DNA of 64,000 bases. Source: Selaginella moellendorffii. Its lineage: Eukaryota; Plantae; Lycopodiophyta. The position numbers and the translations under genes were made by a program. Position 1 is the stretch's first letter; each line of letters begins with the position of its first letter. This document shows positions 47,201 through 52,995 of the stretch, in pieces. The notes under the pieces were generated by a model. It had not been told where the DNA came from. It saw nothing but the letters and a program-made list of their open reading frames with translations, and did not search any database. The stretch covers positions 124,001 through 188,000 of the forward strand of contig NW_003314306.1 in the NCBI RefSeq assembly GCF_000143415.4, read 5' to 3'.

Positions 47201-48081
47201 TCAAAAACGCGACTTTAGCCGAGGCCTCACCAACGACTGACCGCCATCCACCGCAACGGTGGTACCAGTGATGAAAGACGAATCCTTGCTCACGAAGTAG
47301 AGCAGGCTCGAGGCCAAGTCGCGGGAACCATCGGCCCAGCGCTCCAGCGGAAGAAGCTTGCTCACGCTGCTCGTCGTCAAGGCCGTGTTCTTGCCACTCG
47401 AGTTTGCCGAGATCATGGCCGCTGCGTCCGACTCGCTCCAGCCACGAACAACGCAGTTGACGCGGATGTTGAATTTGCCGAGCTCCATCGCCAGCGCCTG
47501 GCCAGGAACATCGAGATCGATCAAAAACTTTCCAGAGGTATGGAACTTTTTCTCTCTCACCTTGCTCAACTGATGGACTCCCGCAATGCAGGTGCTGTAG
47601 ATCCCCGCTCCTGGAAACAATCCTCGCTCGCTCCCAGCGATGGACGTCACAAACACGATCGATCCACCAGCTCCGGAGAGTTTCATGCGTCTCGCCACGG
47701 ATCTACTCACCAGCCAAGCCGCCTTGAGGTTCTTTTCCACCGCTCCATCCCAATCTTCCTCGCTCGCTTCCAGCACCGGCTGAAAGCTCCCTTGATCGTG
47801 ATCGCACAAGAAGACGAGCGCATCGATCCGCCCAAAAGCCGCCCACGTGCTGGCGATCGATTGCTCCACGCTCGCTTCATCGCCACGGAGATCGAGCTCC
47901 ACGAATCTGCAAGACGCTGGGGCAATTGGAGCCGGTCTGCCGCCCGCGATCACGATCCTAGACAGGGAAAAGCGTGAAACTCGAATCGAGCGCCGCTCAC
48001 TTACTTGAAATCGCTGGATGCGAGAGTGAAGAGCAGAGTGTCACTGTCTGGCGTTGGAGTCACGAGGAGCAATACTGCCAT
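47201..48081 (-). CDS. Atypical short-chain dehydrogenase/reductase with PTS1-like C-terminus
   Basis: Exons 48081-48005, 47957-47561, 47497-47201. FGRIDALV, GGSIVFVTSI, ALAMELGKFNIRVN, ITGTTVAVDGGQSL, C-terminal RPRLKSRF. Confidence 0.85.
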
Positions 48082-48449
48082 AGCTTCCGGGTATAGGGTT
48101 CCTCCTTGCTAATGACAATTCATAAAAACTTTGGGATACCATATAAACATTTAGGGCTGACGTGGACAAATCACATAGAGATTTTAGCGCTGGCGTGGCC
48201 CCGTGACACAAACCGTCACTCCTATTTTGAAAACCAGAAGAGGGAGAGAGGAGCGATGGTGAGTGGAAAGGAAATGGCGGAGAGGAGAGGCGGCGGAGGG
48301 AGGAGCGGCGGCGATGGAGCGATTGGCGGCACGGGTGCGTAGAGGCGGCGGTGTTGATGAAGCTGAAACTCCCCAAGGTTAGGGTTGGAAGGAAGATATT
48401 TGGCAACGGGGGCATTCTTGCCAAGGCAAAAAAGGGGTGCGCGTCGGGG

Positions 48450-50210
48450 ATGGCGCCTCCCTGTGGGGGCGGCCCTGACAGCACCGCCGCATCGACTCCT
48501 CGGGTAAGCGATCCTCGTCATTCTTGGATATTTCGCTTGGATTCGTTGCATTGTCGAGTGTTTCGATCAATCTTCCTCAAGCTAGCTTGCATTCTTGGAT
48601 ATTTCGGCTGGATTTATGAGTGCCGCTTGCATTATCGAGTGTTTCGATCAATCCATTCGAAGCTAGTTTGCATTCTTGGATCTTTCGTTTAAATTCGTGA
48701 ATGCCTCGAGTATTTCGATCCATCCATTTGCTTACCTGTGACATTCAAGCTGCTTGTGTTGATCTATTTCACGCTCGATTTTTTTTGCGAATGCGATTCG
48801 TGCAGGAGCGGACAAAGCTGAATCAAAAAGCTGCCAAGCTCATGAGCCAGTCAACAAAAAGAAGACTTGCAGTGAGTGCCGAATCAGATATTGAGAAAGC
48901 AGCAGCTTATGTTCCAAGGGTAAGCTCGTCGCTCATTCCTCTATGTTTGGTTCTGTCAATGCTTGGAATTTTTCTCAACGAGCGATCGATGTTTTTGCTT
49001 TTCTCATTTCTCAGGCCATCGAAAAGAATGAAGCCGCGCGGGAACGCATTCAGCACGCATTGGAGAAGAACTATCTTTTCAAGTCTCTCGACAAGGAGCA
49101 AACAAAGACGGTAAAAGTTCTTCTCCGCAAAGAAGCTTTGCCGATTAGCTCACCATAATCCCTCAAAGGTGCACGGTAACAATTATAGTAGCTCAAAGCA
49201 TTTGGCTTTTGTGTTTGACGCGGGATTGTGCTTCAGGTGGTGGATTCTGTGGAGGAAGTTAAGTACAACCCCAATGACATTATAATCAAGCAGGGCGATG
49301 AGGGTGACAAATTTTTCCTCATCGAGGTGTGCTTCGTCATTCCATGTTTTTTCCCTTGTTTTGACTCTTTGTTTAGATAGGTGAATGTGAAGTGTGGTTG
49401 AAGGACCCAGAGAGGATACGCCCCGAGATGGTCAAGAGATATGGTCCTGGAGACACATTCGGAGAGCTTGCGCTTCTGTACAATGCTCCCCGTGCGGCAA
49501 CTGTCAAGGTTTTACAATTCATTAAAATATGTTTGCTGGTTTTGCAGGACTCATTTGGTATTCTTTCCAGGCAATTACAAGCTGTACACTCTGGGCGGTA
49601 GACAGGCCCACTTTTCGAGCGATTCTTATGCAAACTACCAACAACAAGCGGCAATTATACGAAAAGTTTTTGGCAGAGGTTCCTTTGCTGAAGGTAAATA
49701 GTTTGCAATCGTTTCTCCATCAATTCGCCTTTATTTTGGTTGGCGTGTAGACGCTAACAGCGTACGAAAGATCCGCAATTGCCGATGTTTTGGACGCGGA
49801 ATACTACGAACCAAACACAGACATTATAGTGGAGGGCCAAGAAGGAAACAAGTTTTATTTTCTGGAAGAAGTAAGGCTCGCTACCGCTTGTGGAAACTGA
49901 ATTTATTTCGCAGGGAGAAGCCGAGGCAAGGACAGGAGACAAGGTACTAATGAAATACAAGCGTGGAGATTACTTTGGGGAGTTGGCGCTACTAAGCAAC
50001 AATCCTAGAGCAGCGACTGTCAGAGCGACAACGAAATGCAAGTGCGTTTCAATTCATCGGGACAGTTTCAAGGTCAGCTCATTTTGTTGAAGTTGCTCGT
50101 ATTCCTACCGCATTTGCTCGTTTGTACTCTAGAGATTGCTTGGAAAAGTAGAAGACATCTTAGAGCGGAGGAAAGAAGAATACGAGAAAACTTCTGCAGG
50201 CACAAGCTAA
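48450..50210 (+). CDS. cAMP-dependent protein kinase (PKA) regulatory subunit, about 321 aa
   Basis: Exons 48450-48503, 48806-48919, 49015-49110, 49237-49326, 49377-49508, 49571-49693, 49751-49870, 49914-50072, 50133-50210. Inhibitory site KRRLAVSAES; two cNMP cassettes FGELALLYNAPRAATV and FGELALLSNNPRAATV; FKRLLG. Alternative ATG at 48357. Confidence 0.92.
48518..48725. repeat. Degenerate ~75-80 bp tandem repeat in PKA-R intron 1
   Basis: CATTCTTGGAT(A)T...TCGAGT(G/A)TTTCGATC...AAGCTAG repeated about three times. Confidence 0.75.
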
Positions 50211-50694
50211 TCGCGAGAAGACTTAGCCACAGTTCTGGTTAACTCCAGGTTTGCCGTAGATATTTGAAATTGGAGTGTCAGGATCAGGTTCATGCATATT
50301 TGACTGGGAAAAGAAAGCAGTGTCATTTTGCATTTGGAATCCTGTGTCACGTGAACCGCCGCCTCTCTGATTCTCGCAGAGCAAACTAATCTTGCGATCT
50401 GCAAACACTTCGGTACTATAAAGTGAGAGAGGAGCACCGCCGAAGCGTGGAGTTCGTAGTGAGTCCTAGTTCAGCTTTTCATGCTGTCTGTGTGAGCGCG
50501 CCTCCTCGCTGAAAAGGCATCCAGTACCTCAGGACGCTTAGCTCCTGTTTCAGGACTGTATATTGCGTGTTTGTCTTCGGAGAGGATTCTTCCTAGTGCT
50601 GCTTTCTGATGCATAAAGTCTATATCTAAGCAGTTAGTCTAGGATTGTGGTGTCCGAGTTGCTTGCTGTTCTTTTAACGACTTGATATCTTGCA

Positions 50695-51955
50695 ATGGCA
50701 GCAGCTCAGACACTCCAGCCAGCTTCAGTTCCTTCGGTCCACAATATTCCCATTTCAGGGGCAAGCACCAACGTTGGCTCCCTTGCGAAAGCTTTGCAAG
50801 GCACAGAGACCATTCCGGAGGTGTTCTTGCTTCCTGAGTCGGAGCGTGTCACAGTGCCTCACGATGGTTACTCCGAGCAGGTGTCCCTGCCAGTTGTGGA
50901 CCTCGGGGAACTGTTGCTGCCGGAGTGTTCCGAGGAGTCGAGGAAGAGAATTGCTCGGGAAGTTGCGGAGGCCAGCAGCGAGTGGGGATTCTTTCAGGTG
51001 GCTGGCCACGGCATCCCTCTGGAGCTGCTGGAAAGAGTGAGAACTCAAGGACGAGCGTTCTTTTCACTGCCTGCCGAAGACAAGGAGAAAGCATCGCTCG
51101 GTCTCTTCCAGGGATACGAAGGCAGGCACGGCTTCATTCCAACTCGCGTCCCGTGGTCCGAGACTTTCACTTTGCTAATTGCTCCAACTTCCAACGTGGT
51201 GCCGATAGTTGAGAAGTTATGGCCAGATGGAAACTCGGAGCTCAGGTACTTCAGTTATCTCTCTTCTATTTACAGTTTCCCGCTCGTTGATCACCTCATT
51301 CTCGCAGCTCCACCATCATGGACTACGGCAACGAACTCCACTGCCTCGGGGTCAAGATCCTGGAGCTTTTAGCCGAGAGCCTGGACTTGGACCAGGATTT
51401 CTTCAGCAAGAACTTCAAATCCAAGCACTCCGCCGGGATGAGAATGAACTTCTATCCACCGTGTCCGCAGCCGTCCATGGCACTCGGTCTGGGAGCCCAC
51501 GCCGACCCAAACTGCCTGACAATGCTCTACCAAGACGAAGTCGGTGGCCTCCAGATCCAAAAGGACGACAAATGGATAGCCGTCAAGCCCGATGTCGACT
51601 CACTGGTCCTAAACATTGGAGATAGCCTCCAGGTAAACCAAGTTATTCTCTTCTTTAACTTCTCGCTCGTTACTGCTTTCTCTTTCAGGCGTGGAGCAAT
51701 GGCAGGTTTCGCAGCGTCCAGCACCGCGCTGTTGTGAATGGCAATAACGCTCGTTTGTCCGTTGCCTTCTTCTACAGCCCGGACGACAGTGTATCCATGG
51801 AGGTTCCAGCGCAGCTCGTGGACGAAGCCCATCCACTGCTCTACAGGCCCTTCACTTGGGCAGAGTATTTGCAGCAGATTAGAACCAAGCGGATGCGCGG
51901 CAAAGGTGGCCTGGACACGTTCATGAAGATCTCAGACGAGAGCAAGACCGACTAA
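50695..51955 (+). CDS. 2-oxoglutarate/Fe(II) dioxygenase, GA20-oxidase-like
   Basis: LPVVDL, WGFFQVAGHGI, VPWSETF (cf. LPWKET), NFYPPCPQP, H-A-D, SVQHRAVVN, RLS. Exons 50695-51245, 51309-51632, 51689-51955. Confidence 0.9.
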
Positions 51956-52189
51956 AAGGAAACCTCAACGCAAATGTCTAGTTTTATCTTTTTATGAATG
52001 ACAGATCTAAGCATTATATGGACGAGTGCATCTGAAAATAAAGCGTGGTCCCCACGACAGCCAGGCCAGAGACTATTCACACGAATTTTCCGTGTGATTC
52101 AGGACCACAAAAGATTTATCACGTATGACAACAACATTCCATCCGTGTCCACTACATTTTTTTTATATATATATATTTGAGGTAATCCA

Positions 52190-52995
52190 AGATGCTACAA
52201 GAAGTGGCACCAAAACCATAATATCTTACAAGCTTTTACAATTTGTTCCTGGAATGCAAAAGGCACTATAGCAATTGCCATAAAGGGTCACAAGGAAGAT
52301 GATTTTACATTCAGCTTAGTTAATTATCAATGCAAGTTCATTCATTGTAAGCAATAAAGGATTATAACAATGGAATTAATAAGGAACGGAAGCCAGAAGT
52401 TCCATTCATTCATGGTGAAGATAACCAGTTAACCAGCGCATAAGGTTGAACATGCATCCATTACATAAAGCACAGTGCTGGTCAGCCATCTTCACCATGA
52501 ATGAAACAGGAACAGGCTCTAGGAGATTTCTCCAGGCCTCCTCCAGCAGGATGTTTCACTCCGCTTCCACCCTCGATCACTGCACAACATGGTGCTACCA
52601 TTGGATTGGACTCGGCTCCGCCCTGGATGATCTTGTCGTGGATGTCTCTCAGATCTTCCAGCCTCTAGCACGCGTTTAGAGCCGTGATCTTGTTTGGAGC
52701 CACGCCGTGTAGCTGCATGGTTTGGAAGATCTTGAGAGCTTCCTTGGCCACGCCACTGTGCTCGGCGATGGTTTCGGTCCACAAAGTCACATCCGGTTCC
52801 ACCAGTGCTTTGCTCGCATCCATCATGCTGCCGCACTTGAGGTACATCTTGACGATGTTCTTCCCGAGGAAGGCATCGAGCTCCAGTCTGTAATTTCACG
52901 TGGAGCTCTTGGGCTTCGCAGAGTGCCCGGTGCTCGCCACAAAAGTTTGCTACTGGAGCATACTCGCCAACCATCTAGAGAGCTTACCAAGTTCC
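52190..52995 (-). pseudogene. Internally deleted duplicate of the PPR gene (59417-61163) and its 3' flank
   Basis: 52200-52590 matches 58804-59200; 52591-52992 matches 60560-61003 with small deletions; about 1.36 kb is missing. Confidence 0.9.

Follow-up and report, generated by a model that had tools for sequence, protein, structure and literature searches.

The gene at positions 48450 to 50210 of the window, a 64,000-nucleotide stretch of the Selaginella moellendorffii genome (GCF_000143415.4, contig NW_003314306.1, positions 124,001 to 188,000), is intact, transcribed and correctly spliced. Its product is very probably a cAMP-binding regulatory subunit of protein kinase A (PKA-R), intact, kinase-less and free of a docking domain, that serves as a cAMP-released inhibitor of the PKA catalytic subunit (PKA-C). 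Judged by its sequence, the protein carries every feature of a cAMP-type R subunit, and the identity proposed by the initial annotation is supported by sequence, fold, inhibitor site and phylogenetic tree alike. The novelty which that annotation implied is not upheld: the gene is already listed as a PKA regulatory subunit in both RefSeq and UniProt, and a characterisation of the family appeared in 2024, hence the finding is correct but already known.

The exon model was rebuilt by hand from positions 47800 to 51000. It consists of nine exons on the forward strand, whose borders are all GT..AG and all in phase 0, spliced into a frame of 966 nt that runs from the ATG at 48450 to the TAA at 50208-50210 (321 codons plus stop). 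The constituent features, with the evidence for each in brackets, are as follows:

48170 to 48449, + strand: transcribed 5' leader (contigs, list of upstream ATGs)
48450 to 48503, + strand: exon 1, coding part from the ATG at 48450 (model, contigs, start context)
48806 to 48919, + strand: exon 2, inhibitor (pseudosubstrate) site RRLAV-SAE (RRLAV at 48860-48874; pairs with RRGAI-SAE of RI-alpha)
49015 to 49110, + strand: exon 3, linker and N-terminal helices of the first cyclic-nucleotide-binding domain (model)
49237 to 49326, + strand: exon 4, where the beta-barrel of CNB-A, the first binding domain, begins (model, Pfam, contigs)
49377 to 49508, + strand: exon 5, first phosphate-binding cassette, GELALLYNAPRAATV, at 49461-49505 (model, Pfam, alignment)
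49571 to 49693, + strand: exon 6, long B/C helix between both binding domains (model; predicted helix 205-229)
49751 to 49870, + strand: exon 7, where CNB-B, the second binding domain, begins, with Tyr239 at 49763-49765 (model, alignment)
49914 to 50072, + strand: exon 8, second phosphate-binding cassette, GELALLSNNPRAATV, at 49977-50021 (model, Pfam, structure-library search)
50133 to 50210, + strand: exon 9, C helix with Tyr344 and stop TAA at 50208-50210 (model, alignment)
50211 to 50458, + strand: 3' untranslated region (contig ends from about 50289 to 50458; without a splice out)

Parts of the stretch are present in 20 public sequencing runs from 9 studies, whose tissues are hidden. The share of sequence words found per run (0.2-0.56) fits mRNA and not genomic DNA. 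Four runs from four studies were aligned to positions 47600 to 52600, the resulting contigs carrying no expression levels. All eight introns are found as exact joints in spliced contigs, with 302, 95, 126, 50, 62, 57, 43 and 60 nt skipped, respectively, and five of the eight joints are present in all four runs. The runs are not labelled as RNA; since the contigs lack introns at GT..AG borders, however, they must derive from RNA. Contigs of the leader start at 48170 (run X1) and 48241 (run X7) and are continuous to 48502, while at the other end of the gene contigs stop between approximately 50289 and 50458 (runs X7 and X2). Run X3 additionally splices from a second donor, 49168/49169, which lies 58 nt inside intron 3 (49111-49168), with a joint from 49166 to 49235. 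The corresponding transcript reaches a stop after 134 amino acids, keeping the inhibitor site without a cAMP-binding domain, and is probably an unproductive isoform. We also note that intron 1 harbors an 81-nt unit repeated in tandem approximately 2.7 times, with diverged copies (48519-48730, 79-91% alike). This repeat occupies most of the intron and was missed by TRF, yet was picked up by another repeat search.

The exons, borders and frame of the clean nine-exon reading put forward in the initial annotation are thus confirmed, whereas its length of 321 amino acids reflects the shorter of two possible starts. A second in-frame ATG is located at 48357, 93 nt upstream of the ATG at 48450 and inside the transcribed leader, and gives a product of 352 amino acids. 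The context of the downstream ATG is stronger (G at -3 and +4) and that of the upstream ATG weak; the RefSeq model uses the latter. Three short upstream open reading frames (ATGs at 48256, 48274 and 48314) precede both in-frame ATGs in the leader and possibly contribute to translation control.

The 352-amino-acid product is identical, letter for letter, to XP_024541401.1, annotated as 'cAMP-dependent protein kinase regulatory subunit [Selaginella moellendorffii]', and the limits of the public gene on scaffold GL377610.1 of GCA_000143415.2 match the present model exactly. The identity was traced by comparing exon 8 with a representative protein library, by a local BLAST search of the model, and then by using the Riccia protein P0030 as query. 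The nearest library proteins in the local BLAST search are P0030, P0047 and P0031, with 54-57% identity. The search with P0030 yielded named orthologues in liverworts, mosses, ferns, Ginkgo, Cryptomeria, Chara and chlorophytes as well as the 352-amino-acid protein of Selaginella moellendorffii. A further protein encoded on another scaffold, XP_024537666.1, differs from XP_024541401.1 in one residue (L272V) and probably represents the other haplotype. Older models of 293 amino acids (EFJ18174.1 and EFJ21906.1, from 2010, one for each haplotype) begin inside intron 2, and therefore lack the first two exons together with the inhibitor site. The UniProt entries D8S0D3 and D8SB21 still hold such truncated forms, also named PKA regulatory subunit. 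No occurrence of the accession numbers of the gene was found in the searchable literature.

With respect to domain composition, Pfam assigns the cNMP_binding domain twice (E = 7e-44) and nothing else to the protein, and single exons alone already match the same family; the Ras-GEF (CDC25-homology) domain of Epac is accordingly absent from the Pfam result. Residues 68-72 of the 352-amino-acid form, N-terminal to the first binding domain, read RRLAV. As the initial annotation had proposed, this segment at 48860-48874 is a pseudosubstrate with Ala at the P-site, like RI subunits, and it aligns to RRGAI of RI-alpha. The same holds for the two cassettes (residues 178-192 and 296-310), described there as complete and of the cAMP type: Glu and Arg, the residues that grip the cyclic phosphate, are invariant and both cassettes read PRAAT, with Ala in place of the Thr of PKG. 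The alignment to RI-alpha spans the inhibitor site to the C-terminus, pairs RRLAV-SAE with RRGAI-SAE, and matches both cassettes residue for residue. Tyr239 and Tyr344 are aligned to the capping residues Trp260 and Tyr371 of RI-alpha, respectively.

In the AlphaFold model, built with 20 aligned relatives, both binding domains are modelled with confidence (pLDDT mostly above 85), and residues 1-78 ahead of them are predicted to be disordered. A Foldseek search returned PKA-R chains exclusively for the top 18 matches (E = 1e-27 to 1e-30), with the first PKG chain at rank 19, and the predicted fold is closest to the kinase-bound conformation (rmsd of about 5.4 A to 2qcs_B). An Atlas look-up gave animal PKA-RII-like proteins as the nearest clusters. 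When the whole protein is ranked against solved structures, the PKA-R of Plasmodium (3e-66) is followed by RI-alpha (7e-62), RII (1e-50 to 1e-52) and human PKG I (1e-42 to 1e-44). For exon 8 alone, the PKA-Rs of Plasmodium and Toxoplasma rank first, ahead of apicomplexan PKG and, after it, RI-alpha.

The latter ranking bears on a different reading, namely that the protein is a receptor for cGMP, or else the regulatory half of a PKG that is split or has gone unrecognised. Apicomplexan PKG chains score nearly as high as PKA-R, whether single exons or the complete protein are compared. Human PKG I, however, trails RI-alpha by approximately 18 orders of magnitude, and neither trait of PKG, a fused C-terminal kinase or a Thr after the cassette Arg, is present in the Selaginella protein, with Ala at the respective position of both cassettes. 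Likewise, the gene lacks an exon for a kinase, and none of the transcripts connects it to one. Together with the tree and the AU test described below, which set the protein apart from kinase-fused proteins, this makes the cGMP or PKG reading extremely improbable, and we retain the assignment as PKA regulatory subunit.

The genomic surroundings are consistent with this assignment. The initial annotation had stated that no kinase domain follows, and indeed the frame stops in exon 9, the 3' untranslated region is unspliced, and the next gene (forward strand, from 50695) encodes a 2OG-Fe(II) dioxygenase. No joints out of the last exon, and hence no splicing into a downstream kinase, were found among the contigs of the four runs between 47600 and 52600; a kinase domain is absent from the neighbouring gene and from anything joined to the PKA-R gene by these contigs. 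Run X1 contains one unspliced contig (50131-51242) that extends from exon 9 through the intergenic stretch into the dioxygenase gene, while in the other three runs both genes are on separate contigs. This contig reflects touching or overlapping untranslated regions, or read-through, and not a fusion of coding exons. On the upstream side, a gene for a short-chain dehydrogenase is located on the reverse strand, head to head with the PKA-R gene. The outermost contig ends of this pair are approximately 80 nt apart (48087-48170), with a TGACGTGG motif in the gap. Given this short distance, the two genes probably share a common bidirectional promoter.

For phylogenetic analysis, the tandem-domain region of the relatives was used, with a kinase motif flagging fused rows of the PKG type. 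The names of the sequence clusters gave a few anchors; fungal PKA-Rs and a Stentor protein named PKA-R by UniRef served this purpose, and the tree contains no animal sequences. A quick tree of 85 rows places Selaginella within a clade of Viridiplantae with a support of 98. In a careful tree of 67 rows the embryophytes are grouped with support values of 95/87, embryophytes together with Chara with 99/93, and Viridiplantae with 98/99. The green clade is nested in a kinase-less group (97/97) together with fungal PKA-Rs that bear an RIIa domain, and this group includes zero kinase-fused rows. A constrained tree that unites plant and kinase-fused proteins is 88 log-likelihood units worse and is rejected (AU p = 6e-6); the tested group was named after the quick tree, the question itself having been posed earlier, by the initial annotation. 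In the phylogeny which that annotation had suggested as a check, the protein thus falls among the PKA-Rs without a kinase and is separated from the kinase-fused proteins. Within streptophytes the clades correspond to groups of organisms (Chara, Selaginella, gymnosperms, ferns, liverworts and mosses), which fits vertical descent, and several deeper forks are unresolved.

Of the 26 relatives checked, from chlorophytes to gymnosperms, 25 retain the motif RRx[A/G/S]VSAE, and the docking Tyr, located at the tip of the first cassette, is nearly invariant over the same range; both argue for the continued presence of a basophilic kinase partner. The residue at the P-site itself differs between lineages: Gly is found in Chlorokybus, Chara, liverworts and mosses, Ala in Selaginella and ferns, and Ser in Ginkgo, Cryptomeria, chlorophytes and fungi, such that both gymnosperm proteins differ from the other land plants sampled. 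Conceivably, the protein binds cAMP yet has lost its kinase partner, acting alone as a buffer or via other partners. The missing docking domain would be in line with such a fate, but a nearly invariant RRxxV-SAE across green plants is hard to explain without the active site of a kinase, and a homologue of PKA-C exists in Marchantia (PMC11032487). We therefore regard a loss of the partner as improbable and continue to favour an inhibitor of PKA-C. A literature search found no mention of a PKA catalytic subunit of Selaginella.

The RIIa dimerisation/docking domain is absent by Pfam in Selaginella and in eight other proteins of the green lineage, while a fungal control has it. In animals and fungi, it is through this domain that R subunits attach to their anchors, among them proteins of the flagellar axoneme. 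It is not a universal feature of PKA regulatory subunits, as exemplified by Dictyostelium. For this reason its absence is not treated as excluding a PKA-R, but it does count against our preferred explanation with respect to anchoring to axonemal proteins. Among the fold matches is chain Xk of PDB 9fqr, which is RI-alpha in the 96-nm axonemal repeat of bovine sperm. Animal R subunits therefore do sit in the axoneme, the plant protein being devoid of the usual anchoring domain. We tentatively suggest that the PKA-Rs of the green lineage constitute a distinct, docking-domain-free variant that might be monomeric, might forgo axoneme anchoring in the style of animals or Chlamydomonas, might carry a lineage-specific P-site, and might have a role beyond flagellar motility. 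If true, the differences at the P-site would change whether the catalytic subunit can phosphorylate these proteins, and the occurrence of PKA-R in Cupressales as well as mRNA in many Selaginella runs would point beyond flagellar motility.

By analogy to the family, the following mechanism may be proposed. In the absence of cAMP, the pseudosubstrate and the first binding domain would dock in the active-site cleft of the catalytic subunit and block the kinase; binding of cAMP to both cassettes would then free the active kinase. As the docking domain is missing, the complex probably comprises one R and one C subunit, unlike the R2C2 tetramer of animals. The cAMP would be supplied by CAPE, as orthology and literature suggest. 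In Marchantia, CAPE as well as PKA-R1 and PKA-R2 are enriched in antheridia and their loss impairs sperm motility (PMC11032487, 2024); the same study describes the homologue MpPKAC and one group of plant PKA-Rs. CAPE has been reported in Selaginella moellendorffii (PMC5159850, PMC8115329). The published background given in the initial annotation, on PKA-R in Marchantia sperm motility and on CAPE, is correct (PMC11032487; PMC5159850 and PMC8115329). It is plausible, and matches this published work, that the Selaginella protein is the receptor of a CAPE-cAMP-PKA module as described for plants with swimming sperm.

Its main role is thus somewhat likely to be the control of flagellar beating in sperm, like that of MpPKAR1/2. 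Alternatively, a genuine PKA-R might act mainly outside sperm in Selaginella, for example in tissues of the sporophyte, or in both contexts. Several observations speak in favour of this possibility. Transcripts occur in 20 runs from 9 studies, with complete intron removal in each of the four runs examined; should those runs come from ordinary vegetative material, expression extends beyond sperm, in contrast to that of the antheridium-specific genes of Marchantia. Cryptomeria japonica, whose sperm are non-motile, retains an intact-looking orthologue (P0167), paralleling the reported retention of CAPE in Cupressales; Ginkgo too has a PKA-R (P0164). Furthermore, PKA-R is present in Chlorokybus and chlorophytes, where CAPE is absent (PMC8115329), and therefore the receptor predates CAPE. 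On the other hand, the tissues of the runs are hidden and strobili-bearing shoots include microsporangia, and the orthologues of Marchantia are antheridium-enriched, with a double knockout that affects sperm motility (PMC11032487). In addition, no orthologue of flowering plants, Pinaceae or Gnetales is found among the best 120 relatives (lowest score 255 bits). This is consistent with the accepted loss, yet does not amount to proof across whole genomes. A role mainly outside sperm is hence a possibility that we hold with some doubt, and flagellar control remains the preferred assignment.

Taken at this strength, the gene documents the persistence, in a vascular plant, of the receptor side of the classical cAMP-PKA switch, which is lost in flowering plants. 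It adds no new kind of system, as the gene is already named in RefSeq and UniProt and liverwort orthologues are functionally characterised. Its use is that of a verified, transcript-backed gene model for extending the work on Marchantia to lycophytes.

A comparison with known systems places the protein among several relatives. PKG shares tandem binding domains of the same fold, but its fused kinase and its cassette Thr have no counterpart in Selaginella. The best matches among solved structures, with respect to both sequence and fold, are the PKA-Rs of Plasmodium falciparum (5kbf) and Toxoplasma (5j3u). In these parasites the inhibitor site reads KKRLSV, with Ser instead of the Ala of Selaginella, and the lineage is different, such that the likeness reflects the conserved core. 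Dictyostelium likewise has a short PKA regulatory subunit without dimerisation domain that pairs one-to-one with the catalytic subunit, albeit in a different supergroup. Mammalian RI-alpha (PDB 2qcs, 6no7 and 4mx3) is approximately 40% identical from the inhibitor site onward and is alike in the inhibitor site (RRGAI versus RRLAV), in Glu, Arg and Ala of the cassettes, and in the capping Tyr; Selaginella differs in a Tyr at the position of the capping Trp260, and in the missing dimerisation/docking domain, which suggests no usual AKAP binding and probably no dimer. Function has been established genetically in Marchantia only. The Marchantia PKA-R-like protein P0152, which is either MpPKAR1 or MpPKAR2, is approximately 55% identical, falls into the common embryophyte clade and, as in Selaginella, has no docking domain. 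MpPKAR1 and MpPKAR2 consist, like the Selaginella protein, of a disordered N-terminus, an inhibitor site and two cAMP-type binding domains within about 350 amino acids, and the P-site is Gly (RRTGV) in Marchantia and other bryophytes versus Ala in Selaginella and ferns.
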